Shown piece after piece: positions 9,896-61,844 of a stretch of DNA of 64,000 nt. The translations under genes and the position numbers were made by a program. Each line of letters opens with the position of its first letter. The first letter of the stretch is position 1. Location of the stretch: positions 124,001 through 188,000 of the IMG/VR virus record IMGVR_UViG_3300024520_000047, one strand, 5' to 3'. Under the pieces are notes generated by a model. That model was not told where the DNA came from. It saw only the letters and a list, made by a program, of their open reading frames with translations, and did no database searches.

Positions 9896-10648
9896 TTAAA
9901 TATTTTCTTCCTCATCTTCATTATATGCCCAACTTTTCTTGATGTCAGAGTCATTATAATTATCAACCTCCTGTTGTGTTAACACGTATTCATGCTTATC
10001 TTTTTGTTTGGACATCTCGCCTTGTTTCTCATCCCAAAAATCACTTATTTTTTGGTTGAATGGTCCACTATCCAAATATCTAAGGTCTAATTTTTCCTGT
10101 GGTGTTGGTGCACGGTATTTTTCAATTTTACTTTCTAGGTTTTCTACCGATGATACGATATTGTCCATATCGTTTAGTTTAGTCTCTAAATCATCTATTT
10201 TAGACATTAAAGAATCTATACTACCTTTTTGTGTTTCTATATTTTGTTCGAGTGAGTCTGTTTTATCACCAGCTTCTTTAGTCATAGTAACTAATTCCGT
10301 TACATCTAATTCTTCAACATTTTCTGTTGGTTCTTCATCTTCAATGTCATCTCCCAACACTATCTCATCACCAGTATCTGTAGTTTCTTCTTCACCAGCT
10401 AATTCAAATTCATCTCCCGCGTCGTCAGTTTCTTCTTCACCAGCTAATTCAAATTCATCGGTAGTCTCTTCTTCAGTATCATCAGGTTCAGCTAAATTTA
10501 ATTCATCATCTTCTTGTTCTAATTGGAATGCTCTGGTACCGAGCCCTAAAAATTGTTCATTTAATGGGTCAACATAACCATTAATGTTATTAAATCTTTT
10601 AACTTCTTCAGAAATTAAATTCTCGACAATGTTTGTGTGTTTGCTCAT
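9896..10648 (-). CDS. Acidic coiled-coil protein, possible prohead core/scaffold or internal protein
   Basis: LISEEVKRF...LNEQ leader, D/E-rich repeats, heptad region; function inferred. Confidence 0.45.
   Translation of the reverse strand: MSKHTNIVENLISEEVKRFNNINGYVDPLNEQFLGLGTRAFQLEQEDDELNLAEPDDTEEETTDEFELAGEEETDDAGDEFELAGEEETTDTGDEIVLGDDIEDEEPTENVEELDVTELVTMTKEAGDKTDSLEQNIETQKGSIDSLMSKIDDLETKLNDMDNIVSSVENLESKIEKYRAPTPQEKLDLRYLDSGPFNQKISDFWDEKQGEMSKQKDKHEYVLTQQEVDNYNDSDIKKSWAYNEDEEENI
10382..10459. repeat. 33-bp perfect direct repeat (45-bp period) encoding DEFELAGEEET twice
   Basis: agtttcttcttcaccagctaattcaaattcatc at 10382-10414 and 10427-10459. Confidence 0.9.
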
Positions 10649-10649
10649 C

Positions 10650-10856
10650 TTAATCCATTAATAATGTTCTACCGTCTTGGGTTACCATTTTTTTATTAAC
10701 TCTTTCAATAAGTCCATCTTTGCTTTTTATTGTATAACACTCACCAGTATCTTTATCACAGACCTCTTCAAAACCTTCTTCTTCTACTTTAAGGTCTTCT
10801 TTGGTTTTTATTTTTTTACCAAGAAACTTATCTAATTCTTTTTCTAAATTTTTCAT
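10650..10856 (-). CDS. Hypothetical small protein
   Basis: 68-aa ORF preceded by the TATTTATA motif (10872-10879); contains CDKDTGEC. Confidence 0.65.
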   Translation of the reverse strand: MKNLEKELDKFLGKKIKTKEDLKVEEEGFEEVCDKDTGECYTIKSKDGLIERVNKKMVTQDGRTLLMD

Positions 10857-10923
10857 AATGTTTTCTTTTACTATAAATATATGGTTAGATGTGAAATTAT
10901 CTAATTATATAATTCTTTTATAG

Positions 10924-13900
10924 TTATGCCAAATTATTTGCCCAAGTGGTGTCATTGGGGTATGGGGTGGGTGTGTATCCATGTGTATTTTTAATTTTAG
11001 CGTTTAAACCGGTTTTTACACGACTCATCGATACGTTCCCGTTGTTATCTTTCTTATCAAATAGTATCTCTATATAAGATAAGGATGTGGGCTTTGATAT
11101 CAAAAATTCCTTTAACTTATCGTTAAGGTTTGTGGTTAATGTACCAGTTGTTAAAGCTTCTTTCATTCTAAAACACGGACATCGTTTATTTGCAAATTCA
11201 TTATGCCCTTTAATCACTTTTTCCCACATTGTAGCTGGAACCCCAGAGTCACCCGAAACCCACTTATTATTCTTTATTTCAAAAAGTGCAACATCATTAT
11301 TGGGGTAATCTCTAAATTTTAAAACTAACTTTGTTGACAAATCAATGAATTTGAGACTAACTACTTCTTTATTAAATAATAACCATAACAATAACCACTC
11401 TAATGAGGTTTTTTGTGCTGTTGTGGGGTAATCCCCCCCTTTAGTGTCGTATGTTCCCATTTTTGAACAGTTAGCTATCATGGAAACTCCCATAGACTCC
11501 GAATTCTTACCTGTTACATGTGCCCCACTTAAATTAGCTGGTCGTGCACCTAACACGTGTCCATCTGTTGAGGAGCCCCCAGTTCCCCGAGAAATTAAAT
11601 AATGGTATCCTATTCCAGTAAATCCTCTATCTTTATGTTGTTTATTTATATTTTCTACTGGGTCTGCACCATAATCAATACCTGCCGTCACATGAACAAT
11701 GACCATTTTAACATTCTCTTTGGATAAACTAGAAGCTTGCCCTGAACTTTTTTCGTTTTCTCCTTCAGGACCAAACCCTCCTCTAGCAACTTTAGTTTGT
11801 GTTTGTGTTTGTTTTTGTCTAATTTTACTTATAAACGACTTATTTACCGTCCCAACTAAATTATCTACTTCTGGTAATCTATGGAATGGCACTCTTACAC
11901 CAGTAAATGTTGTACTCATAGTGTTTGGTTGTATTTGATGTTCCACTTCCAATATTAAATAAGGCCCACTAAACATCGGTACATGTCTTAAATTAAAATA
12001 CATTGTTGGTTGTATGCACACATTTCCCATAGCTTCTATCTTACACATATAAGACCTACTTTTATAAACGTTAAATAAGCTAATTCCTTGTGTTTTAATA
12101 TTATTATCATTAGCTGATTGAGCCATCATTTCTGTCACAATAAATGATTCTGAAGTATTTTTAAATTCACTTTGATTTAAACTTATGGATTTAAATACAC
12201 CCTGATTTTGTATACCAAAATCAACCGCAAATGATACTACTTTATTGCACCGTGCTGGGTCATAACAATCAGAAAATAATGGGTTGTCTGCTGTTCTTCC
12301 AAGCATAAATGAATCATTATTATATTTTGTTTGTGGACCTAAATCTGATAGTTGTGTTGAGGGGTCTCCGACATACTGGACAAGAAACTTGGGTGATGAG
12401 TCTAGGTAGTCTACTTCTAAATGAGTCCCAAAAACAGCATTTGCTTCATCTTGTGTACTTAGTTTTGGGATTTTTCTATTACCATCAGAAGTTATACCAT
12501 AAAAATTAATATAACTAGGCAACGCTAAAAAGTTAAAAAAGTTTCCTTGTAAAATAGAGCCAACCATGGTATATACACTATTATTAGCGTTAGCGTCATT
12601 ACCAAAATTTTTAATTGCATCTGTAGATATAATAGCGACATCCCCAATATCACGATTCGCTCTATCTAAAAATAGAAAATCTTTAAATAATAATTTATTA
12701 TTAAAATTCTCACCAGAAATCCACTTATCATTTAAAGTTTTAAAAACCAGATATTGTTCTAATTTATTTTCATCTGTATTATATATTGCTTTTTCTTGAA
12801 ATTCCTCACCTTGAGTTAAGGCAACTGTCGGTAATTCTGATTTTAAATCAATAAAAAACTGATTTAAGAAATTAAATTGTGCTTCATCAGATTTGTCTAT
12901 AATATAAGTTTTAATATTACTTTTAAAAATATCTGGGGTAAATGGTATTCCCGTTTCTTGAGCTAATAATTTTTGGGTTACATACATTCTTATTACTTTA
13001 CGTAGCAATGTAATGTTGTTACTTGTAAATTCGATATCCATTTCTTTAAAGAAATCTGTAACCAAAGACCCACTATCACTATAAGATAGACCTTTAGTGC
13101 TTCCAGATGATGAATCATCATAAAAACCTACTTCTAATTGTAGTGTTTGCCATGTTTGTGGATTTCCTAGTTGGGAATTAGCTACTGTAAGTTCAGGCGG
13201 TAAATTATTGGAATATGAACCAAAATTAAAATAGTCTGCATCACCAACAATAGTTCTTAATACTCTAATATTGACATCTTTAGGGTTATAAAAATTAAAA
13301 GCTACTTGTTGTTTTAAAAATGTAGTTAATGTGGTGCTAATTTTATTTAATTGTATCTTACCTAAATTAAAACTAAATTCTGTAGTATCTGCTGCCGCAA
13401 CCACTAAATCCTTTTTAATTGTTAACATTTGTCGTAATACCGATTGAAAGGTCTGTACTGTTGGATTAGTAACGAGACCCCCACTAACATCCAATACACT
13501 ATTGTTGTCCGATTCTTTTTTACAGAAATCTAAAAAATAATTTTCAAATACATCTAGTATGTCTGGGGTAAAAATATCAAAAAGTTCTTCTATGCTGCTA
13601 TATTCAGTAGTATTTGTAATATTAAATGAATTTTGACTATCATTTTCATTATCAATAACTTTTAAGTACTGCTTGGGTGTGGGATAAGTGTTACTATTAT
13701 GTTCAAAAAATCCATAACTTGACATTCCCCACGCTAATCGTATAGCTCCGTTATGTGTTATCGGGTTATTAACCAGTTTTTGTGGGTCATTAACTTCAAA
13801 TTGTAGTTGTTGTGTTTTCATTCCACCAGCTGACGGAAATAAAAAATAACTAGGTGTTGTATATCCAGTTAAAAATGAATCTCTGGTTGTATCATAATAA

Positions 13901-17454: not shown

Positions 17455-17465
17455 TTACTTAAACT

Positions 17466-27432: not shown

Positions 27433-28080
27433 TTATTCTTTAGCATGCATTACAAATAACTTTTCACTTAATTCTTTAGGCAAATCTCTTTTAAGTAACA
27501 TCATTTGTTTTATATTCTTCATATCATCATCAATGAATACTATTTCATCATAACTATGTAATAGTTTTTCTACCACTTCAGCCTTTTTTTCATAATCTGT
27601 TTTAGATTCCAAAGTGGTGGCTCTATTCACATCATTAATAGCAAAAACGTTTTCTCGATTTATACGGTCACCCAAAGGAATTAACTCACCATACTTATCT
27701 TTATACATCAACCAGTCCTTCAAACCCTGATAAACTATATCTTCATTGGACCTTGCGGTTAATATCCCAATTTGATGTCCTTGTTTTATAAAACTATCCA
27801 TTATAGCAAGATTAGCTATTATGGGTTCTGCTTGAGAAATGGACCGTCTAGTTTTTTCTGGGTCAAGAAAATCCCTGTAATCATAATATTTTTTATTTTC
27901 AGGTGTTACATGTTCCAAACCATACTCATAAGGGGTCAATGCTACCTCCTGTTCCTCGTTTGGGAGTTTTCTATAGATATATACCCCAGTGGGTTTTAAG
28001 AGTGTGTCGTCAACATCTAATAAGATTAACCTATTAGTTTTTGCATATTCTATTAAAATTTGTTTTATTAAACTTTTCAT
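27433..28080 (-). CDS. HAD-superfamily phosphatase
   Basis: LLDVDDTL motif I, ILTARS motif II, VFIDDDMKNI motif IV. Confidence 0.8.
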   Translation of the reverse strand: MKSLIKQILIEYAKTNRLILLDVDDTLLKPTGVYIYRKLPNEEQEVALTPYEYGLEHVTPENKKYYDYRDFLDPEKTRRSISQAEPIIANLAIMDSFIKQGHQIGILTARSNEDIVYQGLKDWLMYKDKYGELIPLGDRINRENVFAINDVNRATTLESKTDYEKKAEVVEKLLHSYDEIVFIDDDMKNIKQMMLLKRDLPKELSEKLFVMHAKE

Positions 28081-28100: not shown

Positions 28101-28116
28101 AATAAATATATTTATT
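28101..28116. promoter_or_regulatory. Perfect 16-bp palindrome made of two back-to-back TATTTATT motifs between divergent genes
   Basis: AATAAATATATTTATT. Confidence 0.6.
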
Positions 28117-44135: not shown

Positions 44136-46403
44136 TTATGTTGGCACATCTGTTGTTCTTCCACTTAATGCTACATTATAACTTAATGCGTTATTTTCAC
44201 TATTAGGTGCACTACCCACTCTATTGTAAATATCCATACCGGAACTATCACCATTTAATGTGGAGACATTATTGTAAACTAAATTTTGTTCTGTCATACC
44301 GATACTTGTGCCGTCATTTCCGTTTCCTGAAGCGTCTGGAACTGTCCAATCAGTGGAGAATGTAGCTGTACTATCTAACTTCCACCAACCCTTTAAATTA
44401 GCACTTTGTATTATTGTAGTGATTGGAACACCATTATTGTAAAGTTCAGCTACTTGACCACCAGCGGTATCACCAATAGATGAAACCATACCATAAGTTA
44501 AATCAATATCCCAAACTGATATATTGGATAATTTTCCATCGTCACCAATAGTTCCACTTGTAAACCCCCCAAAATATTTACCCACACCGTAGACACCTGT
44601 AGTGTCTGAAGCTGTCGCCCCAATGTATGGTCTTGAATTTACAGATTGTTGTATGGGCCCTGCGAAGGTTGATGTGCCTTGTCCAGCTAATAAACCGTCT
44701 ACAAATATTTTTACACCGTTGGTATTTGTGGTGCCGTCCCATAATGCTAGAATGTGGTGCCACTTATTATCTGGTAAAATTTGGGATGATGTTTGGTCTA
44801 ATGAAAAATTTAAAGAGCCGTCACTATTAAAAAAATAAAAAGTAGCTTTTCTATAACCACTAGCCCAGTCTGCTCCTATATTAAGATTCCAACTTCTATT
44901 ATATGTATAGGTTGAATTATCATTTGAAATTATGGTTTGTTGTACCCCACCACTCCCCGTTATTTGAGTTTTAATCCAAGCTGAAATAGTTATGGCGTTT
45001 TCTACATTTACACCTTGTAATGGTAGTTCAATTATTTTCTTTTCACTTCTATTACCATAATTAAAACATTGTGGATATTCTGAAACGTCATTTGGTATTT
45101 GCCAATTCCCAGAACTATCTACTTCCCAGTTTGCACTCTCAGCCATTCTGTACCAAGCTAAGGGATTTAATAAAGATAAATCAGAAGGTTTTCCGTTATT
45201 GTAAATAGCGGTTACCTCTCCGACTGATAGGGCAGTATCAAAAATACTCACATCATCAATTTGCCCTTCTAAATGCCAATTAACACTATTTGTTAATGCT
45301 CCTATGGTTGGTTCAATGTCAGGATTTGAATAGAGAATTGGACTTACTGCTGCCCCGGTAAACTCTGTTTCATCCACATATAGTTTTACTGCTTCTGAAC
45401 CTGTTGTGCCATCAAAAGTGCCCATCACGTGATGCCACTCCCCATCGTTGGGGGTTATCCCTGTTGATACCGCATTTGAGGATGATGTACCATCATTTGT
45501 ATGAAATACTGTAAACGAAAAACGATTATATCCCGTACCTCTCCATGCAAGTATCCAATTTCTTTGTGATGGAATAGTTGTAGATGTTGTATCCTCACAA
45601 ACTATAACCTGAACATAAGGAGCTGGACCTCCTGTATTTGTTGTAGGTATCTTAACCCACGCAGAAACAGATATTGTAGATGTAATTCCTAATGATGCTG
45701 CGCCACATTGTACACTATTACCAGTACCATTAAATTCTAAAGAATAATTACTGAATTTATCTTTATTTTCATTATTTGGAATTAACCATTGTGGGTCCCT
45801 ATATATTGCATTATCTCCCATTCTATACCAGACAACTGGATTAAAGGTTGCTATTCCTGACGGGATACCGTTACTATAAATTCTTAAAACTTCAGAAGAT
45901 GATAATGCCGTGGTGAATATCGCTACCTCATCAATGTTACCAACAACACCACCATAATTTCCATTTCCTATTCTGTTATTAGCTTCTGTTACGGCACTCG
46001 TTCCGCCACCTGACCCACTACTTGAACCATCTACATAAGCAATCATAGTTGGACCAGGTTCTACCGTTATACATATATGGTGCCACAGCCCATCATCTAT
46101 TCTTCCAGCAGTTGGTAGCCAAGAGTAAACCAAACCTTTAGATGCACTTATGTTTCCATATCCAAATGATATTGTACCACCAAGACCATTTAACAAAGTA
46201 AATCCATAAGGACGAAGACTAAGATTTATTATAGTATCAAAATTCCCCATTGAGGTACTATTATACCACAGACTAACAGTATAAGAATCTCCCGCAGAAT
46301 AATTAAATATGTCTCCTAAGTCTCCAATATCGACATAACCAGTCGTACCGTCAAATTCCATTGAATAGTTATTATAAAAAATTGGTCCGTGTGTTACTCC
46401 CAT
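44136..46403 (-). CDS. LamG/concanavalin-A-like protein, about 3 modules
   Basis: Repeated YS(M/L)EF(D/N)GT...WHH...YVDG...IDEVAIF..ALS; ends RTTDVPT. Confidence 0.85.
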   Translation of the reverse strand: MGVTHGPIFYNNYSMEFDGTTGYVDIGDLGDIFNYSAGDSYTVSLWYNSTSMGNFDTIINLSLRPYGFTLLNGLGGTISFGYGNISASKGLVYSWLPTAGRIDDGLWHHICITVEPGPTMIAYVDGSSSGSGGGTSAVTEANNRIGNGNYGGVVGNIDEVAIFTTALSSSEVLRIYSNGIPSGIATFNPVVWYRMGDNAIYRDPQWLIPNNENKDKFSNYSLEFNGTGNSVQCGAASLGITSTISVSAWVKIPTTNTGGPAPYVQVIVCEDTTSTTIPSQRNWILAWRGTGYNRFSFTVFHTNDGTSSSNAVSTGITPNDGEWHHVMGTFDGTTGSEAVKLYVDETEFTGAAVSPILYSNPDIEPTIGALTNSVNWHLEGQIDDVSIFDTALSVGEVTAIYNNGKPSDLSLLNPLAWYRMAESANWEVDSSGNWQIPNDVSEYPQCFNYGNRSEKKIIELPLQGVNVENAITISAWIKTQITGSGGVQQTIISNDNSTYTYNRSWNLNIGADWASGYRKATFYFFNSDGSLNFSLDQTSSQILPDNKWHHILALWDGTTNTNGVKIFVDGLLAGQGTSTFAGPIQQSVNSRPYIGATASDTTGVYGVGKYFGGFTSGTIGDDGKLSNISVWDIDLTYGMVSSIGDTAGGQVAELYNNGVPITTIIQSANLKGWWKLDSTATFSTDWTVPDASGNGNDGTSIGMTEQNLVYNNVSTLNGDSSGMDIYNRVGSAPNSENNALSYNVALSGRTTDVPT

Positions 46404-46418
46404 ACCTTTCTTTTTTTA

Positions 46419-47945
46419 TTATGTAGGAACATCTGTTGTCCTGCTATTTATGTCCATTTCCATGCTAAGGGCGTTATTGGTACTACCAGGGGCGTTTCCT
46501 GTTCTTCCACTTAGTGGAATATTTACGCTACTTCCATCATTCCCATTTCCAGAACTATCGGGTATTATCCAGATATCTCCTGTCCCACCACTATATGCCA
46601 TATCTCCCAGTCTCCAGTAACCAACAAGGTGGCTCTCCCCTGATAGGTCACTCGGAACACCGTTGTTCCAGATGGCAGTAACTTCTCCGGCTGAAAGGGC
46701 ACTATTAAAGATGGATACATCATTAATCAGCCCCTCAAAAGGTGACCCCCCATTAGTTCCTGACCCTATCCAAACTTCTTCTCCATTAGCCATAGCATCT
46801 GTACCTCCATCCTCATCACCATCTTCTAAACCATCTACATAAATTTTTAAACTTCCAGCCCCTCCACTTGAATCACGCACTCCTACAATATGATGCCAAT
46901 TTCCATCTGTAACAGATGTACTTGATGTTGCGTAAGGATACCCACTATTGCTTAACATTATGGCAACTTGATTGTTAGTTCTTACAAATAATGCAAACCC
47001 ATTCATAACCCAATCTAGACCTCTGGTTACTATCTGTTGTTGTGTTGAGGTGGTGCTTGTTTTTATCCAAGCCGAAATAGTAACATCAGCAGTCATTTGT
47101 AAACTTGCATCATTACCACAATTAACATAATCGTCTGTACCATCGAAACTCATGGAATAATTGCTCACATTATCCTTATTGCTATTTTCTGGCAATAACC
47201 ATTGGGGGTATTTAAATACACCATTATCTCCCATGCGGTACCAAGCAATGGGAGGTATTGGTAAATTTCCTACATTATTTGGTTTTCCAGTTCCATCATT
47301 CCAAGTTGGATATGATACCCAGTTTGGTACAGGATTCCCAAGACTGCTTGGTCTTATTCCGCCATAAATTGTCAATACCTGTGCGGGTGTTAATTCATAG
47401 CTAAATATAGCAGCCTCATCCACTTTGCCACCAAAGGAACTTGCGGGTGTGCCACTATAGTTCATTCCCCCAATATATAAAGAGCCAGAGTTGTTGAAGT
47501 CGGAGCTTGGAGTTCCGTTGTTAGACCTATAGTAAGACACGTCATATCCATCAACATACAATGTCATCCCTGTTTCCGAGCCAGTACCATCGTATGTTCC
47601 TACTATGTGATGCCACCCATTTGTTAAACCTTGGGAAGGACCCCAATAATTGTTGTCCCTTACATACATTGAATGAGAAAAATGGCTATCCAAATTAAAT
47701 ACAAAAAACAATTGATTATTAAAATTAAACTTATACCCCACCTCCCATATAGCGCCTCCCCTGTCCTCTATTTTGCTTATTGGTATATTGTTGACTGTTG
47801 TTGCTGGAATATTTGTCCATAAAGATATTGAAAATGGTGTTGATTTGTTTTTGTCCAATACATTTCCGCAGTCAACAAAATCATCAGTTCCATCGAAACT
47901 CATCGAATATTCATCATTAAAAAGTGGTCCGTATACTAAAGGCAT
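46419..47945 (-). CDS. LamG/concanavalin-A-like protein, 2 modules
   Basis: Same module pattern; ends RTTDVPT. Confidence 0.85.
   Translation of the reverse strand: MPLVYGPLFNDEYSMSFDGTDDFVDCGNVLDKNKSTPFSISLWTNIPATTVNNIPISKIEDRGGAIWEVGYKFNFNNQLFFVFNLDSHFSHSMYVRDNNYWGPSQGLTNGWHHIVGTYDGTGSETGMTLYVDGYDVSYYRSNNGTPSSDFNNSGSLYIGGMNYSGTPASSFGGKVDEAAIFSYELTPAQVLTIYGGIRPSSLGNPVPNWVSYPTWNDGTGKPNNVGNLPIPPIAWYRMGDNGVFKYPQWLLPENSNKDNVSNYSMSFDGTDDYVNCGNDASLQMTADVTISAWIKTSTTSTQQQIVTRGLDWVMNGFALFVRTNNQVAIMLSNSGYPYATSSTSVTDGNWHHIVGVRDSSGGAGSLKIYVDGLEDGDEDGGTDAMANGEEVWIGSGTNGGSPFEGLINDVSIFNSALSAGEVTAIWNNGVPSDLSGESHLVGYWRLGDMAYSGGTGDIWIIPDSSGNGNDGSSVNIPLSGRTGNAPGSTNNALSMEMDINSRTTDVPT
47176..47234. repeat. 59-bp near-identical repeat (3 mismatches), copy 1; copy 2 at 48724-48782
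   Basis: ttattgctattttctggcaataaccattg + 7 nt + ttaaatacaccattatctcccat. Confidence 0.9.
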
Positions 47946-47960
47946 GTCTCTATTTTATTT

Positions 47961-49433
47961 TTATGTTGGAACATCGCTTGTTCTATCATTTATGGTCATT
48001 CCTGTACTAAGACCGTTATTGGTACTATTTGGTGCATCTCCAATCCGACTATCTACTGCCATCCCGACCGCACTACCATCATTACTATTTGTGGAACTAT
48101 CTGGGACTACCCAAATATCTGCCGTTGCTGCACTATATGCAGTATCACCTATTTTCCAATAACCTACTGGATTTAGTGAAGATAACTCTGGTGTTACTCC
48201 ATTATTGTAGAGGACCATAGCTTGGGCATCCGTTCCGTGGTCGGTATTAAATATAGCTACATGATTTAGACATCCTTCCATTTGATGGGTACCCCAAAGA
48301 TATCTTGAACCTAAGTATAAATCCGTTGTATTATCATACACTATGGGACTTGATACTGTTGTTGTATTTCCTGCCGATACTCCATTTACCCAAGTTTCCA
48401 TTTCTGTACCATTATAGTTACAGAGTAAATGAGTCCATACTCCTAGTGGAACATTACCACTAATTAATGGATTTGAACCTCCGTTACCTAATCTAAAATA
48501 AACTTGTCCAAATGTTGTAATGTGAATAGCATAACCTTTATTGTATCCAGTTCCCCCATCCATTCCTCCTGCTATTGGATAAGGACCACTTGCACCATAG
48601 GTATCTAATTTAACCCATATACTAATTGCTAATGCCGTTGTTGGATAGATACTTGGATTTGTGGGTACTTTAATATAATCATTTGAACTAGTAAAACTGA
48701 GGGAATAATTTGAAGCCTTATCTTTATTGCTATTTTCTGGCAATAACCATTGTGGGTCCTTAAATACACCATTATCTCCCATTCTGTGCCACGAAATTGG
48801 ATTAAAAGGTGGGTTGTGTAATTTTATTGGTCTTCCATTAGAATAAAGTGCGGTTATTTCTGTTACTGAAAGAGCCCTATCCCAAGCGGAAACCTCATCA
48901 ATTAATCCTGGATAATACGAAGTTGCAACAACTGTTGTATCAACATAATTTCCTAATGCTCCAATTTTATGTAATCCTTGTGTAGCATAACCACCAGTAG
49001 TTCTCATAGTTGCTGTCACCTCTGGTATAGGATTACCATCAACATAAATGTTCACAGTGTAGTATGTAGTTACACCATCGTATGTGTAAGTGTAAGCTAT
49101 ATGATGCCAACTCCCATCGTTAAGAACCGTAGTTCCAACACCTCCTGTGCCTCCAACACTGCCTACAATTCTAACTACAAAATCTGTAAATGGAGAATTG
49201 TAGGTAGCTATATGTACTGTTTGGTCTAACATTGTCACAGATGTAGAAACAGATACTGGATGCTTTCTTATATATCCCGAATACGCATCTGCTTTTATCC
49301 AAAATGACATAGAGAAATTGCCTAACATAACTGATGGTATTGTCAGGTCTATATCAAGGTACGAATCCGTACCATTGAAATACATAGAATATTCATCTTC
49401 TAATGTCCATAGTGGTCCAACTACTGAGCCCAT
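47961..49433 (-). CDS. LamG/concanavalin-A-like protein, 2 modules
   Basis: Same module pattern; ends RTSDVPT. Confidence 0.85.
   Translation of the reverse strand: MGSVVGPLWTLEDEYSMYFNGTDSYLDIDLTIPSVMLGNFSMSFWIKADAYSGYIRKHPVSVSTSVTMLDQTVHIATYNSPFTDFVVRIVGSVGGTGGVGTTVLNDGSWHHIAYTYTYDGVTTYYTVNIYVDGNPIPEVTATMRTTGGYATQGLHKIGALGNYVDTTVVATSYYPGLIDEVSAWDRALSVTEITALYSNGRPIKLHNPPFNPISWHRMGDNGVFKDPQWLLPENSNKDKASNYSLSFTSSNDYIKVPTNPSIYPTTALAISIWVKLDTYGASGPYPIAGGMDGGTGYNKGYAIHITTFGQVYFRLGNGGSNPLISGNVPLGVWTHLLCNYNGTEMETWVNGVSAGNTTTVSSPIVYDNTTDLYLGSRYLWGTHQMEGCLNHVAIFNTDHGTDAQAMVLYNNGVTPELSSLNPVGYWKIGDTAYSAATADIWVVPDSSTNSNDGSAVGMAVDSRIGDAPNSTNNGLSTGMTINDRTSDVPT
48724..48782. repeat. 59-bp repeat, copy 2 (LamG inter-module linker)
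   Basis: See 47176-47234. Confidence 0.9.
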
Positions 49434-49442
49434 AATTTTTCA

Positions 49443-50516
49443 TTATTTTTCTGTTTGTAGTTTATCGACATCTTTTCGTTCTCCTTGTATTAAGTAATAA
49501 CAATGGGGGAGACCATCGTCACAATCCACATATACTTCATTATCTGTAATCTCATCTACATAATGAATACATGCTCTTCCTATGGATGTTAATTGTACAG
49601 TTATGGTAACCTCATCCACTAATTCTTTCCAGTACTCTGGTAAAGTAATAACATTATCATCTTTTAATTCTCCCCTTACATAAATACCGTGTTCTGGACC
49701 TTCTAAAACTCCGTGAATTAGTTTCTTCCCTTTTTTGGTTGGGTGGTCAATTTCAAAAGACTTAGTGGTGGCCGCTAAGTGACCGTCTATGGTGATATCA
49801 CCATCTATACGGGTTACCCCAGAGACGTGTAAGGTGACTGCAGTAGATGGGTTAGCAGTCCCAATTCCTACAATACTATTTATCATATGAATGGCACCGT
49901 ACCTATATGGGGTACCACCACCAGTAGGTGCATTACAAATAGCGAATCTTTCTACGGTCGCACCACTTAATGGGTGGGCGTCGTCGGGGTCTCCTACCCC
50001 ATCCCAAGTAAAAAATCTCCAAACTTTAAGGTCATTGTTTGTAGTGGGAAGTGCCCCCATTAAAGCAAAATCCACACCTCTGGACATATTACCGGAATTT
50101 CCTACCTGTACTTTTAATCCACTTCTGTTGTCCAGTCCCGCAAAATCCTCCATATAAGGAAAAAGATGGACACCTTCTTTAACTGTAGCCCCGTCGGTAA
50201 GTCTAAAATTTATGGCAGTCAGGTTATAACTACTACTGTATTGGGGTACAGAGATGATGCCCGCTGGAACTGAGGAAGATTGGATTTGGATATAGCCGTC
50301 ATTATTTAGTGTTCCAAACTCTATTTTACCCCTTAGTCCATTTGGTGCACTACAAAAAACTGATGTACCATCATTCTTTACTGTCAATAAATCTATTGCT
50401 GGAGAATCGTTATTGGTTATCTTTAAAGCGTTGGTCGCGGAGGTGTTATCGTTGGTTTGTATGGTGGAATCACCAAAACAATTAAACCCGTGTTTAATTA
50501 CAAATTCGTTTGCCAT
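49443..50516 (-). CDS. Tail fibre-like protein with a chaperone-like C-terminal domain
   Basis: MANEFVIKHG N-terminus; VGIGTANP; TKSFEIDHP...LIHGVLEGPEHGIYVRG...LPEYW...TVQLT...ERKDV. Confidence 0.6.
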   Translation of the reverse strand: MANEFVIKHGFNCFGDSTIQTNDNTSATNALKITNNDSPAIDLLTVKNDGTSVFCSAPNGLRGKIEFGTLNNDGYIQIQSSSVPAGIISVPQYSSSYNLTAINFRLTDGATVKEGVHLFPYMEDFAGLDNRSGLKVQVGNSGNMSRGVDFALMGALPTTNNDLKVWRFFTWDGVGDPDDAHPLSGATVERFAICNAPTGGGTPYRYGAIHMINSIVGIGTANPSTAVTLHVSGVTRIDGDITIDGHLAATTKSFEIDHPTKKGKKLIHGVLEGPEHGIYVRGELKDDNVITLPEYWKELVDEVTITVQLTSIGRACIHYVDEITDNEVYVDCDDGLPHCYYLIQGERKDVDKLQTEK

Positions 50517-50582
50517 AATTTTTTCTTTTTTTCACTGTCCAAAAAGAAGTCTCTTGTTGGTTATATCTAAATAAATATTTTG

Positions 50583-51353
50583 TTATAAGTTAAATCTAGA
50601 TTTTAAAGCATTATAATTTTGTTGTACTTCATTATATGATAATGCACGGTCATAAATAAAAGTGGGGCCCATGTAACCACGCCAATAAGAATCGGCACGA
50701 GTTCCCATCCAAAATTTAATAAATTCGTTTCTACGAGCCATATTTCCAGTCGAAATAGCGTCATACATTGTTTCTTCATTAAAGTATTGGGTAAAATGGG
50801 TGGGGGTGATAACTGTACAATAATAATTCCATTCCTCTAAAACGGTTTCTAACCTACTCCACGCAATCGTTCCCCATGCCACGGTCCCACAACCAACTAT
50901 ACCAAGTGGACACTGACCACCAACAAAAGTTCTTACTGAATTTGTGGATGTCCCAGCAGAATACCAAAATTGTTGGTTTAAAACCCCGTAGGCAGCTCCC
51001 CCGTTTGAAAATCCAAATATGGTAGCAGCACCATCCGCTTCCGTAGATTTAGCAAATGTACAGATAGTGTAGGAATGAATATCGTAAGTGGCACCCGTTA
51101 CTTTTCCCATATTCCCACTAAAATCTAGAAATTCAATGTAATCATCAGTCCCATCAAATAACCAACTTCCTCCTCCTTCAGGACTATATCGTGGATATGG
51201 TTGGGAACCTGAAGGTCCTTTTAATGTGCCCATAAATCCACCCACTAAACTATGACAAGTGGAATCACCACTAATATAGGATTTAGGGTTGGCTGCGTCT
51301 ACGGCTAATATTAATCCGTCGGTTATTATTGTGGGAGAATAATGAAAACTCAT
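50583..51353 (-). CDS. Single-domain LamG-like protein, paralog 4 of the array
   Basis: IITDGLILAVDAANPKSY...FDGTDDY...QNYNALKSRF. Confidence 0.85.
   Translation of the reverse strand: MSFHYSPTIITDGLILAVDAANPKSYISGDSTCHSLVGGFMGTLKGPSGSQPYPRYSPEGGGSWLFDGTDDYIEFLDFSGNMGKVTGATYDIHSYTICTFAKSTEADGAATIFGFSNGGAAYGVLNQQFWYSAGTSTNSVRTFVGGQCPLGIVGCGTVAWGTIAWSRLETVLEEWNYYCTVITPTHFTQYFNEETMYDAISTGNMARRNEFIKFWMGTRADSYWRGYMGPTFIYDRALSYNEVQQNYNALKSRFNL
50599..50631. repeat. 33-bp perfect repeat; second copy at 51366-51398
   Basis: gattttaaagcattataattttgttgtacttca, encoding EVQQNYNALKS. Confidence 0.9.
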
Positions 51354-52027
51354 AATCCAAATCTTGATTTTAAAGCATTATAATTTTGTTGTACTTCAGA
51401 AGCGGAAAGTGATACATTATATATTTTAACATTCGATATATTACCTTTTGAGTAATTACTATTGTTTACATACCCAATAGTTAAGCTGTCTCCAATGTTT
51501 GAACTAAGGGTAGCGGGGACACCAACTTGGGTGTCAACTAACCCACCATCAATATATAATTTTAATGTACTACCCCCTTCATAGACACCAACAAAATAAT
51601 GCCAATTAGTGTCATAGGTTAATGAATAACTAGCACTGGTATTAGCAGCTCCATTTCTTGCACCAAAATAAACAGAACCATTTAACCACCAATATAATAC
51701 TACTTTGTCAATAGCAGCATCCTGAATTGTATTCCCACCCAACACTTCTCCTGAACCATTTTTTTTACCCCAAAATGAAAATGTGAGAGATGTAACATTA
51801 TTTATTTCTGTTATTGGAGTACAAGATATATTACTATTACTTCCATTAAATACCCATGAACCATAAAATTGTGGCTCAAAGGATACTGATGTGGTGTTAC
51901 CTGTAATATAACCGGTTAAGCTTGTTATGTGTGTATCACCAGACGTGTAAGAAACTAAATTACTAGCATCCATATAAAACACTAAACCATTATTCACTAT
52001 ATTTGGACCTCCAGTTACATTACTCAT
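51350..52027 (-). CDS. Single-domain LamG-like protein, paralog 3
   Basis: IVNNGLVFYMDASN...WHYFVGVY...ISNVKIYN.SLS..EVQQNYNALKSRF; ATGA overlap. Confidence 0.85.
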   Translation of the reverse strand: MSNVTGGPNIVNNGLVFYMDASNLVSYTSGDTHITSLTGYITGNTTSVSFEPQFYGSWVFNGSNSNISCTPITEINNVTSLTFSFWGKKNGSGEVLGGNTIQDAAIDKVVLYWWLNGSVYFGARNGAANTSASYSLTYDTNWHYFVGVYEGGSTLKLYIDGGLVDTQVGVPATLSSNIGDSLTIGYVNNSNYSKGNISNVKIYNVSLSASEVQQNYNALKSRFGL

Positions 52028-52806
52028 AATCCATATGTGTATTTAATTGCATTAAAATTCTGCGTTACTTCGTCTTGGTTTAACACTCTACTATAAAATC
52101 TTAAAATCGGTATTCTTCCCTCGAAACCATATCTTTCACCCCCCAAATACGGACTTGGGTCATCACCGTCATAAGTACCAATATATAATGGATTATAAAA
52201 CACATTTCTAATAGTTGCGATTAAAGGTTGTGTATTGGTTAATGCTCCATTTAAATATATATTAAATTCTAAATTCTCATAATCTATTGTCATAATTACG
52301 TGAGTATAAGCATCACGTGTTATGCCTGTAGCGGTACCTATCGAGTCAATACCCGTAGTATATGACTGTTGCCAAAAAATGTTATCTGGTCCCCCCCCAT
52401 CTGTTAAGTAAACCCACCAGTACCCAAATGAAGAACTTTGAGGCCCTCTATTATATACTCCAGGCCACGAAACAACCCCAAACTGGTTTGAGTTGTATAT
52501 CACAAAATCAGAACTATGACTTCCAGATAAACTAAGTGAAGACATATCAGTAAATTTTACCCAATTATTATTTACTGTAGGGTAATTTGGTATCGGATTA
52601 GGTAATACAATACTACCATCGTCGATATAAGACGTAAGTCCTGTTGTAGAACATATGCCAGCTGCAAAAGCTGGGTCTATAATGTTGTAAACGTTTAATG
52701 GGTCGTCAAATGGTTTTAATACACTTGCTCGTTTTGTGGCATCCACATTAAAAACCAAACCATCACTTACTATGTCTGTCGTCGGCGACCCTATTGTTCC
52801 ACTCAT
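52024..52806 (-). CDS. Single-domain LamG-like protein, paralog 2
   Basis: IVSDGLVFNVDA...IYLNG...RFYSRVLNQDEVTQNFNA; ATGA overlap. Confidence 0.8.
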   Translation of the reverse strand: MSGTIGSPTTDIVSDGLVFNVDATKRASVLKPFDDPLNVYNIIDPAFAAGICSTTGLTSYIDDGSIVLPNPIPNYPTVNNNWVKFTDMSSLSLSGSHSSDFVIYNSNQFGVVSWPGVYNRGPQSSSFGYWWVYLTDGGGPDNIFWQQSYTTGIDSIGTATGITRDAYTHVIMTIDYENLEFNIYLNGALTNTQPLIATIRNVFYNPLYIGTYDGDDPSPYLGGERYGFEGRIPILRFYSRVLNQDEVTQNFNAIKYTYGL

Positions 52807-53507
52807 AATCCGAATCTAGGTTTTAATGCGTTATAATTTTGTTGAACTTCTTCTTGGGTTAATGCTATGTTGTAAATTTTAACGTTGGATATATCTCCAA
52901 CAAATCTGTATGTAGCATTATTTCTTTGCCCAAAATACAAATTATTTCCAGGATAGTTTATAGTATAGGGTAGGGTGGTGCTTGTATAGGTATTTCTTAA
53001 TACCCCATTAAGATAAATTTTTTGTGTTGCTCCGGTCCCTGTTTGTTCGTGAGTAAGTGCTATTTGCCCCCAAGTATCTAATGGGATATAAGTAGCAAGA
53101 CTTGCTACTTGACTTCCATTATAACTATCATTAGTAAAATTTGCTGCTTGACATACTAATAAATCCGCAGATGTAATCCAAATAGCAAGTCCTTTGTTAC
53201 TTGACGCACCTTTCATAAAAACGCATTGATTCCTATTATCGGGTCTTTTAATCCACACAGAGTAAGAAAGTGTCTGTACTTCTATATCTGTAACCCTTCC
53301 ACAATTAATATTATCATCACTACCATCAAAAGACCAAGCCCCATTATTCTCAATTGAGAATCCTACACCATTTTCCAATGTACCAACACTACTAGATACT
53401 AAATCATTACAAGTGGTATTACCACTCACATAAGATTTGGGGTTTGCTGCATCCACATAGAATACTAATCCGTCGGTTACTATTTTTGGAGAATAATGAA
53501 AGCTCAT
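52803..53507 (-). CDS. Single-domain LamG-like protein, paralog 1
   Basis: IVTDGLVFYVDAANPKSY...FDGSDD...ISNVKIYNIALTQEEVQQNYNA; ATGA overlap. Confidence 0.85.
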   Translation of the reverse strand: MSFHYSPKIVTDGLVFYVDAANPKSYVSGNTTCNDLVSSSVGTLENGVGFSIENNGAWSFDGSDDNINCGRVTDIEVQTLSYSVWIKRPDNRNQCVFMKGASSNKGLAIWITSADLLVCQAANFTNDSYNGSQVASLATYIPLDTWGQIALTHEQTGTGATQKIYLNGVLRNTYTSTTLPYTINYPGNNLYFGQRNNATYRFVGDISNVKIYNIALTQEEVQQNYNALKPRFGL

Positions 53508-53508: not shown

Positions 53509-56028
53509 TTAAATACTTCTTACAATGGTCTTCATAACCCAGTTATTAGTGGTAGCAGAGGCAGTGAATGATGCCATTCCACCACTTAACCCAACTGAGA
53601 GTGTGACCGGAGAAGTGTTTCCGATATCTGTTGTGGAGGTTTCACTATAATTAACTGTACTACCACTCCATATTGCCATTACATTTCCTGCACGTGCACT
53701 ACCATTACCAACAATATTATAATCAAAATATGCACTTGTGTATGCACTAGTAGGTACACTATAAATCGTTGTGCTTCCAATATTTACTGTAGATTTAACA
53801 CTACTATTTAAAGCTGGAGCGTCAAAGTTACCCATTAAGACGGTATCATCTGAATTTACAGATAAAATCGGTATTCCTGAAATATCATTTACTGAAAATA
53901 ATTCACCAACTAAACTGTCATTTATAGAGAATAATTGACCTGAACTACCTAAAACATTAAAAACTGGTTGGGTATTTCCTGAGGCAGTAATCGTTAAGGG
54001 CCCATCTACATTAACATCAGGACCTATTGTAACTGGAGAACAACCAGAAATAGTAGACACCCAGAGTTCATTTATACAAGTAGCGGACGTATTTCCAGTA
54101 AAACCACCACTACCCCCACCAGCAGCTACCCAAGTTGTTCCATTATAAAATTGTAATTCATTTAGTGTGGAATCATATACAACCAACCCATCTGCAAATG
54201 TCCCAGAATTGATAGCGTCTCGTTCAACGGTTGTCATAACAGGAGGTAGAAATCCTTTTGTGGTGCTTACCATATCAATTAAAGCACTTGCATCGGGGGT
54301 TATGGTTCCAAAACCAAATGAACCTGTACTATTCCACCACGAATCCTCATCTAAACGAAATTTAAGTTCAGGGCTGTTCGCAGTAGCGATAGTCGCTAAA
54401 TATACACCAAAAGTGTCAGCTTCATCAGGAATTATATTTCCCCCAGATGAATTACGGGCGGCCAGATTAATAGAATTTGCCCCTATTGGGCGTAATTTAT
54501 TACCTATTGTAACAATACCCGCATTAAAAGTATTGTATTCTCCCGCATAATTACCTATTGAGATATTTGTTGCATAGCAATATGCAGTAGCACCTATGGC
54601 TATCCCACTTGTTCTTCCTTGCGTATTGTTTCCTATTGCAATTCCATCTGCTCCACCTCCTGCATCTGTATCAACAAGTGTATTGTTACCCAAAGCAATA
54701 GTGCCCGTTGCTTTTGCTTCGGCATTTGTTCCAATAGCAACAGAAGTGGTACTATGTGTTATTGCATCTTTTCCCAATGTAAATGCGCCATCATCTAACA
54801 TTGAAAACAAAGGGTCACTGCTACTATTTTCTAATAACAAATTTATTGTACCACTTGTATTACCTTGTCCTCTTATAGTTACAGTTCCACCAGTAAATGT
54901 TAGAGTATTTCCATCTAATTTAACTGTTCGTGCAGATGTAACTGTGCCGTCAGAATCATATAATGTGTTAACATCACCATCTAATAATATTTGTCTTGTG
55001 GAAGCACTTAATCCTGCTGCCCAATAACCGTTTGTTTCTTCCCACAATATACAAGCTGTTGTCCCCGAACCTCTTAATATTTCTAAACCACTATCGATAG
55101 GAAATGGTACAGTGTTTCCTGTAGCGTTAGCGTTTAATGTTATAATATTATCGTCTATTGTAAGTGTTTGGGTATTAATAGTTGTAGCTGTACCTAATAT
55201 ATTAACATTTCCCACAACTAACACATCTCCATTTACAGTTGCACTTGAATTGAATGTTGTGGTGGGGATAATGGTTAAATCAGTACCCAAAATTCGTGTG
55301 CTATCACCACCATTACCTAACGCTATTGCACTGTTCCCAGAATCCCAATCCAAACCTAAACTACCCTCAACATAGTATTGATTACTGAAAATGTTACCAG
55401 TTCCTGCCACTGCAGTTAAATCCCCATAAACATCAACTGATTGGTTGAATACTGCGGGGGTACCTATGGTAACTGGAGAACATCCAGAAATGTTTGACAC
55501 CCACAATTCATTTATGCAACTTGCTGAAGTATTTCCTGTAAAAGGTGGGGCACCGGTGGTCCCGCTTACAACATTACCACTAGAATCTAAGCCCAAACTA
55601 AATATAGGTGTGCCACTAACTAGTGACCCAATAGTTAGTGTCTGAGCAGTTAAACCACTTAATAACACGAAGTCGTCATGGACAGTGATTGGGGAATACC
55701 CATAAAAATCACTAGCCCATATACCAGTAAAAGCACTGAGTGTTTGAGCACTTAATGAACCATTTATAGTCACATCTGAGTGAATTGTGGTTGTTCCAGA
55801 ACACCCATAAATGTTATCTACCCAAAATATATTTTGGCAATCTCCTGAAGACGCTCCCCCACCACAAGGTGGTGTACAAAAAATATCTAATAAATTAGTA
55901 CCACCACTGAATATAGACCCACTATTATAGGTATTTGCACTGAAATATACAGGACTTAAAAAAGATGTGGTTAATGGAATATCCCCACCTTCGAAATTTT
56001 GAATAATATTTTTACACTTACACGACAT
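53509..56028 (-). CDS. Tail fibre-like protein with YadA-head-like repeats
   Basis: SVAIGTNA, TIALGNNT, GIAIGNNT, GIAIGATA, NISIGNYA repeats; two copies of GNTSA.CINELWVS.ISGCSPVTIG. Confidence 0.6.
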   Translation of the reverse strand: MSCKCKNIIQNFEGGDIPLTTSFLSPVYFSANTYNSGSIFSGGTNLLDIFCTPPCGGGASSGDCQNIFWVDNIYGCSGTTTIHSDVTINGSLSAQTLSAFTGIWASDFYGYSPITVHDDFVLLSGLTAQTLTIGSLVSGTPIFSLGLDSSGNVVSGTTGAPPFTGNTSASCINELWVSNISGCSPVTIGTPAVFNQSVDVYGDLTAVAGTGNIFSNQYYVEGSLGLDWDSGNSAIALGNGGDSTRILGTDLTIIPTTTFNSSATVNGDVLVVGNVNILGTATTINTQTLTIDDNIITLNANATGNTVPFPIDSGLEILRGSGTTACILWEETNGYWAAGLSASTRQILLDGDVNTLYDSDGTVTSARTVKLDGNTLTFTGGTVTIRGQGNTSGTINLLLENSSSDPLFSMLDDGAFTLGKDAITHSTTSVAIGTNAEAKATGTIALGNNTLVDTDAGGGADGIAIGNNTQGRTSGIAIGATAYCYATNISIGNYAGEYNTFNAGIVTIGNKLRPIGANSINLAARNSSGGNIIPDEADTFGVYLATIATANSPELKFRLDEDSWWNSTGSFGFGTITPDASALIDMVSTTKGFLPPVMTTVERDAINSGTFADGLVVYDSTLNELQFYNGTTWVAAGGGSGGFTGNTSATCINELWVSTISGCSPVTIGPDVNVDGPLTITASGNTQPVFNVLGSSGQLFSINDSLVGELFSVNDISGIPILSVNSDDTVLMGNFDAPALNSSVKSTVNIGSTTIYSVPTSAYTSAYFDYNIVGNGSARAGNVMAIWSGSTVNYSETSTTDIGNTSPVTLSVGLSGGMASFTASATTNNWVMKTIVRSI

Positions 56029-60049: not shown

Positions 60050-60502
60050 ATGCCAGATAAAAATTTATATGATAGAACATTTGAGGTTCCTGATAAATGC
60101 ATTGAACATATAAAAAATGCATTTACAAATTTTAATGGTCCAAAAACAACAGAAGGGTATGAACGTGCAAAAAATATTTTAAAAAATCCAAATATTAGTT
60201 TACCCCTATTAAAAAAAATAAATAACTTTTTTAGAAATGAAGAAGAAGGGACTGCACCATATAATTTAACTGGTGGTGATTACGGTAAAAAAATATTTCA
60301 AAAAATGGAGGACCAAGTACGTAGAGGTGAGTCTTCTTCACGTAAAAATAAAATGAGAGGTGGTATGATGAATACCCACTATAAAGAACATGAAAAGGAC
60401 CAAAATGCTAACCCTACGGGTGTAAATGTCCCAAAAGTAGATAGCGTCCCCGCATTAATCGAACAAATAAAGAAAATTAAAAAACTTATAAACTATTTAT
60501 AA
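60050..60502 (+). CDS. Hypothetical protein, probably head-associated
   Basis: RAKNILKNPNISLPLLKKINNFF...GG segment; C-terminal LIEQIKKIKKLI motif. Confidence 0.5.
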   Translation: MPDKNLYDRTFEVPDKCIEHIKNAFTNFNGPKTTEGYERAKNILKNPNISLPLLKKINNFFRNEEEGTAPYNLTGGDYGKKIFQKMEDQVRRGESSSRKNKMRGGMMNTHYKEHEKDQNANPTGVNVPKVDSVPALIEQIKKIKKLINYL

Positions 60503-60512
60503 AAAAAAAGTT

Positions 60513-60836: not shown

Positions 60837-60851
60837 TAAAGTTTTAAGAAA

Positions 60852-61214
60852 ATGAAACTTTACAACACCCTACATTCACTTATATTAGAAGTAGCTTCTA
60901 GGGAAGACACCAAACAAGCTATTGAAAATAAATTAAGGACACTTATTTATTATGAAGGTGATACCGTTAATAACCCAGGGTGGAGAACAATCGAACCAGT
61001 TTGTGCTGGGACAACAAAAAGAAATAATCCAGTTCTTAGAGCATGGCAAACAGAGGGGGCTACAGATACCGAAGTTCCTGGTTGGAAATTTTTTAGATTG
61101 GATAGGATTAGAAATTGGCAACCGACACTGGATGAGTTTACTGAAGCCCGTCCTGGTTACAACCCAAACGGCGATAAAAGTATGAATCAAGTGTGGTTCA
61201 ACGCAAAATTTTAA
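60852..61214 (+). CDS. Stand-alone WYL-like domain protein
   Basis: IYYEG...WRTIEPVCAG...VLRAWQ...WKFFRLDRI. Confidence 0.75.
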   Translation: MKLYNTLHSLILEVASREDTKQAIENKLRTLIYYEGDTVNNPGWRTIEPVCAGTTKRNNPVLRAWQTEGATDTEVPGWKFFRLDRIRNWQPTLDEFTEARPGYNPNGDKSMNQVWFNAKF

Positions 61215-61223
61215 TAAAAAGAA

Positions 61224-61844
61224 ATGGATAAACTACAACAATCTTTATTAAACGCTAAAAGATTTATGGAGCACGATGCATTAAAAAGTGCCTCCCGAAC
61301 AGCATCAACACCACGGACACAAGAACCTGAAATGGGTGAACCAATTATGGCTCACCAAGTACCAAATATGAATATAAATGAAAGTAGTATTCCGTCAGCG
61401 GCACCAGAAATGACAATGGCACCGAAATCAAAAATGACTAAAGAATCTATTTTAAATTCCAAATTGCCCGACGCGATAAAACAAGCAATGTTAAGTAATC
61501 CAATACCTGACCCTATCCCAGATAACGCCTTATCACCCCAATTCATAAATGAAGTTAGTAAAAAAATGAATTCACAAGACTACAGTATAAGTAATATGAG
61601 AGCAACGGCTAATTCAAACGTTAAAAAAGAAATCGTTGACCCCATACCGTCATTAATTCCAGACCCACCACCTACCCCAGATTCAAGTTCTTTAAAAGAA
61701 ACAATTAAAGAATGTTTAAAGGAAATTTTAGAAGAAGAAAATTTAATCGTTGAATCTAAAAATCTAAAAGAAAATTTACAATTACGAGTAGGAAACAAAG
61801 TATTTACAGGAACTATTAAAAATGTAAAAACAATAAAAAAATAA
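61224..61844 (+). CDS. Hypothetical Pro/Ser-rich protein
   Basis: 206-aa ORF; C-terminal LKEILEEENLIVES...LRVGNKVFTG. Confidence 0.55.
   Translation: MDKLQQSLLNAKRFMEHDALKSASRTASTPRTQEPEMGEPIMAHQVPNMNINESSIPSAAPEMTMAPKSKMTKESILNSKLPDAIKQAMLSNPIPDPIPDNALSPQFINEVSKKMNSQDYSISNMRATANSNVKKEIVDPIPSLIPDPPPTPDSSSLKETIKECLKEILEEENLIVESKNLKENLQLRVGNKVFTGTIKNVKTIKK

Follow-up and report, generated by a model that had tools for sequence, protein, structure and literature searches.

The internal proteins of bacteriophage T4 are the classic case of anti-defence proteins that are injected into the host, and the only cargo known to us, apart from one enzyme, Alt, is a handful of small proteins. Authentic T4 IPII and IPIII start with MKTYQEFIAE/A (here and below, a slash follows the final Glu of a leader), a capsid-targeting sequence (CTS) in which residues 4, 7, 8 and 10 are reported to be critical for targeting and processing, and in which Asp in place of the final Glu stops processing yet leaves targeting intact (PMC9026906). 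Here we analysed a 64-kb window of DNA, positions 124001-188000 of the IMG/VR virus record IMGVR_UViG_3300024520_000047, in which a HAD-family phosphatase and a P-loop kinase each open with a short helix that ends in (L/I)-x-E. These helices, MKSLIKQILIE/Y on the HAD protein and MLTEQINRMKKLMLVE/A on the kinase, are probably lineage-specific versions of the T4 CTS, as judged by sequence comparison. Like the CTS, they are short N-terminal tags that end in (L/I)-x-E directly before the fold, are common to unrelated proteins, and occur together with a gp21-family protease. Unlike the CTS of T4, they are 11 and 16 residues long and are not similar to it in sequence, and their cargo would be enzymes of about 200 residues rather than small basic proteins.

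Several other described systems are relevant for comparison. T4 Alt is a packaged ADP-ribosyltransferase with an N-terminal propeptide (MELITELFDE/D); the linkage of the alt gene to late structural genes has been used as an argument for its packaging (PMC5512222), and the protein is processed at its C-terminus too (PMC9026906). Further T4 propeptides are those of gp24 (MAKINELLRE/S), gp22 (MLKEQLIAE/AQ) and gp21 (...LLIE/T). The enzymes described here differ from Alt, gp24, gp22 and gp21 in their activities, and share no homology of cargo or leader with them. Among the inner-body and ejection proteins of the phages phiKZ, 201phi2-1 and SPN3US, a prohead protease related to gp21 cleaves many proteins of the head interior after Glu, some of them enzymes (PMC9026906, PMC7411985, PMC10052503); these phages belong to another lineage and use another motif and long propeptides rather than a portable tag of 10-16 residues. 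Polyvalent or injected phage effectors are capsid-packaged enzymes that enter the cell with the DNA (Iyer et al. 2017, PMC5512222), whereas the candidate cargo here consists mostly of single-domain proteins with a short tag, not of MuF- or portal-linked multidomain proteins. With regard to the enzymes themselves, the closest counterpart is T4 Pnkp (gene pseT), which combines a D-x-Y-R P-loop 5'-kinase with a DxDxT HAD 3'-phosphatase and has matching folds. T4 Pnkp unites both activities in one leaderless cytoplasmic polypeptide (MKKIILTIGCPGSGKS), whereas here they are divided between two divergently transcribed genes whose products each carry a leader.

Leaders of the HAD phosphatase and the kinase

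The window is part of a single 245,874-bp viral contig that is linear according to IMG/VR, about 77% complete according to CheckV, and has a G+C content of about 33%. Read from the translations of its open reading frames (ORFs), the gene content is that of a T4-like myovirus, here an uncultured marine one: there are genes for replication, for the tail sheath and tube, and giant ones for the baseplate and fibres. When the window was compared with the phage collection by megablast, nothing matched. The genes of the HAD phosphatase and the kinase sit between ORFs read as tail sheath and tail tube (Table 1).

The HAD protein carries what we call a type-A leader, followed by the first strand of the fold at residue 17 and the DxDxT motif at residues 22-26, in which D22 and D24 are invariant. 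The kinase carries a type-B leader, with its first strand at residue 28 and the Walker A motif (P-loop) at residues 34-41; among 44 homologues, E16, K40/S41, D59 and R62 are invariant. AlphaFold models were made from 44 homologues for the kinase and 51 for the HAD protein, and in both of them the leader forms a separate helix, spanning residues 2-15 of the kinase (predicted local distance difference test, pLDDT, 60-64; core 86-92) and residues 2-12 of the HAD protein (pLDDT 56; core at least 90); over the two cores together, pLDDT ranges from 86 to 97. The best fold match of the kinase was the kinase domain of Clostridium thermocellum Pnkp (4jt2, E 3.6e-8), followed by Zeta/PezT and AvrRxo1; its PHROG matches are annotated as polynucleotide kinase, and its D59-x-Y-R62 motif aligns with D35 and R38 of T4 Pnk. 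The second-best fold match of the HAD protein was the 3'-phosphatase of T4 Pnkp (5uj0, TM-score 0.67 normalised to the target). On these sequences and models, the pair looks like T4 Pnkp split over two genes, one for the 5'-kinase and one for the 3'-phosphatase. The kinase-HAD gene cluster recurs in Klebsiella phage Miro and RB43, and hoc lies next to the kinase gene both in Miro and in Aeromonas phage 65.

Homologue searches returned more than 100 marine relatives for each of the HAD protein, the kinase and a WYL-like protein that is also encoded in the window. When leaders less than 60% identical were compared, [IL]xE was present in 40 of 42 non-redundant HAD leaders, against 20.2 expected from shuffling each leader, and stood mostly 4-6 residues ahead of the first strand. 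The P2 position of these leaders varies freely, Pro and Gly included, and P1' is likewise free; the N-termini of HAD relatives read MKNLIKQILKEY... For the kinase, at the same identity limit, nine of ten leaders had [IL]xE at a fixed offset (4.4 expected), and more distant relatives start with MKNLIKKILREELL... These comparisons indicate that the L/I-x-E of the HAD and kinase leaders is under selection.

The leaders were also found to be portable. A profile made only from the leaders of the kinase family gave the HAD N-terminus as its top match in the genome (14.8 bits), the next real match scoring 4.3 bits and the best decoy, from a five-fold larger database, 6.0 bits. When carriers were searched for in 60 related viral loci, the same leader was found to open at least ten further ORFs (14-20 bits; decoy maximum 8.1). 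With their leaders stripped, the carriers fell into 15 unrelated families, including Fe/Mn superoxide dismutase, adenylate kinase, an M23+SLT peptidoglycan hydrolase and a nucleotidyltransferase; the type-B leader also opens a DeoC-type aldolase family of 268-270 aa in relatives. The Pfam domains of these enzymes start right after the leader, as in the adenylate kinase carrier, where position 1 of the ADK model aligns to residue 18; this agrees with the absence of the leader from cellular homologues for which the preliminary description had proposed to look. Between orthologues of the kinase, the leader type is swapped, being type A, type B or T4-type. A third leader, type C (MKLxxxLxxLxE, 12 residues), is common to a phage lysozyme and an acidic 380-aa protein of this genome; a profile built only from the lysozyme leaders of relatives matched the acidic protein at 10.4 bits (decoy maximum 4.4). 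By sequence, both proteins are candidates for further head cargo.

We then considered whether chance could account for the motif. The preliminary description had listed seven peptides from the window as recurrent (I/L)-x-E leaders. All seven are present in the ORFs given for them, and only those of the HAD, kinase and WYL proteins begin at residue 1; the others begin at residue 10 of 250, 31 of 204, 136 of 150 and 165 of 206. The location of the leader just before the recognisable domain, also claimed there, holds for all three residue-1 cases. The recurrence of the bare motif at N-termini, on the other hand, proved to be at chance level in this genome: of 249 ORFs, 23.7% have [IL]xE among their first 16 residues, versus 19.3% of internal windows, and the motif is also present on a 572-aa protein read as the terminase (MTRQELIQE). 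The narrower [IL][ILVM]E was mildly enriched within the first 20 residues (10.0% versus 6.4 +/- 1.4%). With so many I, L, K and E residues in the proteome, nothing can be concluded from the bare motif. Within-genome all-versus-all N-terminal similarity and a four-sequence leave-one-out profile gave borderline results and did not recover the WYL leader, and a tight regular expression for an 'EQINRxKKL'-type motif found only two or three matches in the genome.

These results, together with a WYL profile that finds no other carrier, are what would be expected if composition alone produced frequent (I/L)-x-E and the seven peptides were functionally unrelated. For the HAD protein and the kinase, chance is excluded by the non-circular profile matches well above decoys, the two-fold excess of fixed-offset [IL]xE in diverged leaders, the invariant E16 and the association with a late-type promoter motif described below. 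Their leaders are far beyond chance in the comparative tests, and we consider composition a very improbable explanation of the motif.

Promoter motif, T4-type leaders and the prohead protease

The sequence TATTTAT was found within 60 nt upstream of 57 genes, against 5.7 expected, a ten-fold genome-wide enrichment. The marked genes include those read as sheath, tube, baseplate, fibre and terminase, and also the scaffold and the protease. The extended motif is A-TATTTAT-A/T, with two spacing classes before the ATG, 11-12 nt and 19-29 nt, the shorter of which implies near-leaderless mRNAs. The T4 late-promoter consensus TATAAATA stood upstream of merely 10 genes; because of this rarity, TATTTAT was used in its place. 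From its distribution, TATTTAT is probably the late promoter of this clade. Between the HAD and kinase genes, a perfect palindrome, AATAAATATATTTATT, gives one TATTTAT copy to each, and in sequence looks like a single bidirectional promoter element. An N-terminal [IL]xE with its Glu at residues 9-17 was present in 21 of the 57 TATTTAT genes and in 25 of 192 others (p = 1.5e-4), with an odds ratio of 3.9 that may be inflated, since start-codon calls are more reliable beside a promoter.

The promoter and the gene location also bear on a second explanation, in which the two proteins form a cytoplasmic split Pnkp, working as ordinary intracellular enzymes of end-healing or nucleotide metabolism, and the leader helix is a structural or oligomerisation element that is neither cleaved nor packaged, pairing, for example, the kinase with the phosphatase as in the fused, tetrameric T4 Pnkp. 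The resemblance of both enzymes to Pnkp domains fits such a role, as do the retention of the kinase-HAD gene pair in distant phages, the common leader type of kinase and HAD across relatives, the possibility that the conserved Glu caps the helix, and the fact that T4 Pnkp is, to our knowledge, not a virion protein. A pairing role is nevertheless unlikely given that the same leaders occur on some 15 families unrelated to each other, among them aldolase, peptidoglycan hydrolase, superoxide dismutase and adenylate kinase. The exchange of leader types (A, B and T4-type) between kinase orthologues, the acceptance of Pro or Gly at P2 and the low model confidence of the leaders, which stand apart from the cores, also speak against it. 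So do the structural-gene promoter motif, the location between putative sheath and tube ORFs, and a second, adjacent HAD-like protein that is leaderless in every relative. We therefore regard a purely cytoplasmic role as unlikely.

The link between the leaders and the T4 CTS runs through the kinase. Orthologues with 23-31% identity start with MLRFKTFINE/G, MRKFQQYITE/G, MIDFNEFITE/G or MKNFVQIINE/G, and those of cultured phages with MKSFKDFVSLDE/A (RB43, CCL97701.1), MKKFSEFIKLEE/K (Aeromonas phage 65, ADQ53150.1) and MKSFKQFTESTLTE/A (Miro, AKU44817.1). The pattern of orthologues in other T4-like phages, MK.F..[FY][IL].E/[AG], is near the T4 internal-protein leader, and the distant leaders agree with T4 IPII and IPIII at residues 4, 7, 8 and 10. 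When the 133 T4 ORFs were ranked by a profile of five T4-type kinase leaders, IPII and IPIII took the top two places in that order, although their scores were modest. That profile also found the same 10-mer at the very start (residues 1-10) of many ORFs nearby, for example MKTFLEFITE/A on the adenylate kinase. Because the type-A to type-C leaders are unlike T4 propeptides, the link to the CTS rests on kinase orthology and the shared L/I-x-E. Since the propeptides of the T4 internal proteins, Alt and gp24 differ from one another, we counted likeness to the internal proteins as supportive and not as strictly defining.

The assembly genes of this phage are consistent with such a system. The preliminary description had asked for a gp21-like protease elsewhere in the genome, and one was indeed located outside the window, next to the scaffold gene and a gp23-family capsid gene; a gp21-family protease was also found in both relatives that are more than 70% complete. 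The N-terminus of the scaffold, MEKKSVLEQALLE/AQ, aligns with LIAE/AQ of T4 gp22, and the protein contains 18 [IL]xE sites versus 8.7 expected. The protease itself has ILIE/Y near its N-terminus, like the LIE of T4 gp21 (PMC9026906).

A portable tag could also send its protein elsewhere than to the head core: to the membrane, for example, to the baseplate or another part of the tail, or to a host protease for regulated degradation. In favour of this, the leaders are amphipathic helices, the HAD and kinase genes lie among tail genes and not head genes, the carriers include peptidoglycan hydrolases, which are tail-associated in many phages, and types A-C do not resemble T4 head propeptides in sequence. 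Set against this, CTS/gp21 is the only known T4-like system with a short portable N-terminal L/I-x-E tag (PMC9026906, PMC3012670), orthologous kinases bear a near-canonical T4 CTS, the motif also closes the N-termini of the scaffold and the protease of this phage itself, and the leaders are too polar for a signal or membrane anchor. A destination other than the head thus appears quite improbable to us.

We therefore prefer the reading of the HAD and kinase leaders as counterparts of the T4 CTS. Under this reading, the two genes would be transcribed late from the shared palindromic promoter element; the leader would dock each protein on the scaffolding core of the assembling prohead; the gp21-type protease would cleave after the conserved (L/I)-x-E; and the mature enzyme would be kept in the head and ejected with the DNA. 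We infer the scaffold-core binding, the cleavage, the presence in the virion, the injection and the substrate. The capsid-targeting and gp21-cleavage interpretation of the preliminary description thus has good indirect support for the HAD protein and the kinase, is borderline for the WYL protein, and has weak support or none for the other four peptides, which are not N-terminal leaders.

Several observations weigh against this interpretation. Types A and B each mark a single protein in this genome, and the type-A, B and C profiles had no match among T4 ORFs or propeptides. The small contigs with T4-type 10-mers are fragments of 10-19% completeness that are putatively T4-like, and the late-promoter assignment derives from gene content. 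Where a Glu that closes an N-terminal helix never varies, a structural contact could be the reason as well. An Rnl2-type RNA ligase, with which an RNA-repair pathway would be complete, was not found in the ~77%-complete genome. In the literature, we found no virion proteome or N-terminal sequence for any homologue, including those of Slopekvirus, RB43 and KP15/KP27.

Other peptides and features of the locus

The coordinates of all features are collected in Table 1.

Table 1. Positions of the leaders, their carriers and further features, numbered from the start of the window unless marked as contig positions (outside the window)
Feature	Length	Position	Strand	Matches and remarks
HAD-family phosphatase	215 aa	27433-28080	-	Pfam DUF2608; phrog_415 'polynucleotide kinase'
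Type-A leader of HAD phosphatase	residues 1-11	28048-28080	-	
Palindrome AATAAATATATTTATT	16 bp	28101-28116	both	perfect; within the 43 bp that separate the start codons of the divergent HAD and kinase genes
TATTTAT, kinase side	7 nt	28109-28115	+	
TATTTAT, HAD side	7 nt	28102-28108	-	
Further TATTTAT sites		upstream of 29931, 33382, 22966, 59324, 59375 and 60513		
P-loop kinase, polynucleotide-kinase / Zeta type	217 aa	28124-28777	+	AAA_33, Zeta_toxin, phrog_5268, phrog_505
Type-B leader of kinase	residues 1-16	28124-28171	+	
Inverted repeat	14 nt	28148-28161 / 28067-28080		86% complementary
Second HAD-like protein	150 aa	28770-29222	-	leaderless; DxDxT at residues 7-11
Acidic 204-aa protein	204 aa	29317-29931	-	quoted peptide at residues 31-43; TATTTAT at -22
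Very acidic 250-aa protein	250 aa	9896-10648	-	quoted peptide begins at residue 10
Fibre-like gene array	eight genes	44136-53507	-	
150-aa protein	150 aa	60050-60502	+	C-terminal helix at residues 136-150 (nt 60455-60499) after L-I-E
WYL-like protein	120 aa	60852-61214	+	Pfam WYL PF13280, 21.0 bits (cut-off 21.8)
N-terminus of WYL-like protein	residues 1-13	60852-60890	+	possible type-C leader
206-aa protein	206 aa	61224-61844	+	quoted peptide at residues 165-177, hence not a leader
Phage lysozyme		contig 48736-49317		PF00959, domain from residue 68; TATTTAT 11-12 nt upstream
Acidic 380-aa protein	380 aa	contig 54399-55541		TATTTAT 11-12 nt upstream
Peptidase_S77, gp21-family prohead protease		contig 213471-214181		PF03420 match at 213609-214082, 82.4 bits
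Hsp70/DnaK-like ORF, full-length	621 aa	contig 225736-227601		near head and neck genes
Three neighbouring ORFs with (L/F)TESEL..(I/V)I		contig 234010-238435		at or near the N-termini

The second HAD-like protein, next to the kinase, matches HAD_SAK_1 (18.7 bits, cut-off 25.6) and phrog_415, both weakly. No leader was seen in any of its orthologues, and leaderless HAD proteins also adjoin the kinase in Miro and RB43; it belongs to the conserved kinase-HAD cluster and is probably untagged. A 14-nt inverted repeat pairs the start of the HAD gene (MKSLI) with codons 9-13 of the kinase gene (MKKLM). Relatives do not conserve this internal Met of the kinase, so its use as an alternative start is unlikely.

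Two records of kinase homologues stand apart. In a 232-kb relative record (L033:5255-10618), a 1787-aa ORF has the kinase as its C-terminal domain, shows no Pfam match in its first 1590 residues and keeps the 'LLRE/EKVVGF' junction. This arrangement is like that of polyvalent proteins; it may be a fusion of the polyprotein kind, or else an artefact of the assembly. In Klebsiella phage Roth23 (PQ657796.1, 143149-143988), the depositor labelled the homologue 'anti-RM protein dam3', a name that we could not trace to any paper in the literature searched; in the other records listed, the homologue is called hypothetical, 'Phage protein' or 'protein of unknown function'.

For the WYL-like protein, the Pfam match spans residues 21-90; a few of its homologues have a precomputed PF13280 match, and several are named 'YafY' by JGI. 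Its N-terminus, MKLYNTLHSLILE/V, belongs to a segment, MKLYNT.KSLILEVAS, that is kept in more than 900 WYL homologues, and [IL]xE stood at a fixed offset in four of four leaders (1.2 expected). The WYL-family leader profile found WYL proteins only and no other carrier, and the type-C profile from the lysozyme and the acidic protein matched WYL at 9.0 bits (decoy maximum 6.6). The gene lies within an operon headed by TATTTAT motifs. By these scores, the WYL N-terminus is a possible, borderline type-C leader.

Among the remaining four proteins, the 150-aa protein matched the type-B profile at residues 136-146 (7.8 bits; decoy maximum 4.9), and L-x-E followed by an I..(I/M)..LIN C-terminal helix was found in this protein and in ten of ten distinct orthologues. 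T4 Alt is trimmed at the C-terminus as well (PMC9026906), so the helix could be a C-terminal tag, an analogy that we regard as speculative. In the 204-aa protein, which had no Pfam or PHROG match, the first site (NLVE, residues 9-12) is not conserved in orthologues, and RL[VML]E at about residue 43 is present in 13 of 13; the latter could end a longer propeptide. The 250-aa protein had no Pfam match above cut-off, no PHROG match and no orthologue in the related loci fetched. The peptide region of the 206-aa protein is conserved in orthologues, yet is internal to a generally conserved C-terminal part. We found no support for the 250-aa and 206-aa proteins as tagged cargo.

We further noted a second recurrent helix, (L/F)TESEL..(I/V)I, which three adjacent ORFs outside the window carry at the N-terminus or close to it, and which also lies at residue 32 of the 204-aa protein. 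Its profile scored 16-22 bits (decoy maximum 7.2), a test that is circular because the profile was built from the four sequences scored. In the fibre array, eight consecutive fibre-like genes have two sets of closely related N-termini, MSFHYSP..DGLVFYVDA and MG/MP..GP.F..EYSM.FDGT, and resemble a diversified family of receptor-binding genes. An Hsp70/DnaK-like ORF is also encoded on the contig.

Implications for T4-like phage cargo

If the HAD protein and the kinase are packaged, their most likely role, by analogy with Pnkp, would be nucleic-acid end-healing on arrival in the host. A counter-defence role is one that we infer by analogy with T4 IPI, Alt and Pnkp.

In a wider reading, which we offer tentatively and with some doubt, a widespread uncultured marine clade of large T4-like phages may load a toolkit of enzymes that look ordinary into its heads, by means of three or more classes of leader that can replace one another and perhaps also of tags at the C-terminus. 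The toolkit would include superoxide dismutase, adenylate kinase, aldolase, lysozymes and nucleotidyltransferases besides the kinase and phosphatase of the split Pnkp. Injected with the DNA, these enzymes would place repair and counter-defence chemistry in the cell before phage genes are expressed, and the conserved kinase of cultured RB43-, Slopek- and Aeromonas-type phages would then be used likewise.

A kinase with a near-canonical T4 leader exists in the cultured phages RB43, RB16, Miro, KP27 and Aeromonas phage 65, which makes the idea directly testable. If it is correct, the cargo of T4-like phages, especially of abundant marine ones, would include end-healing and other familiar enzymes, and the leader would provide a sequence signature for recognising injected proteins in metagenomes.

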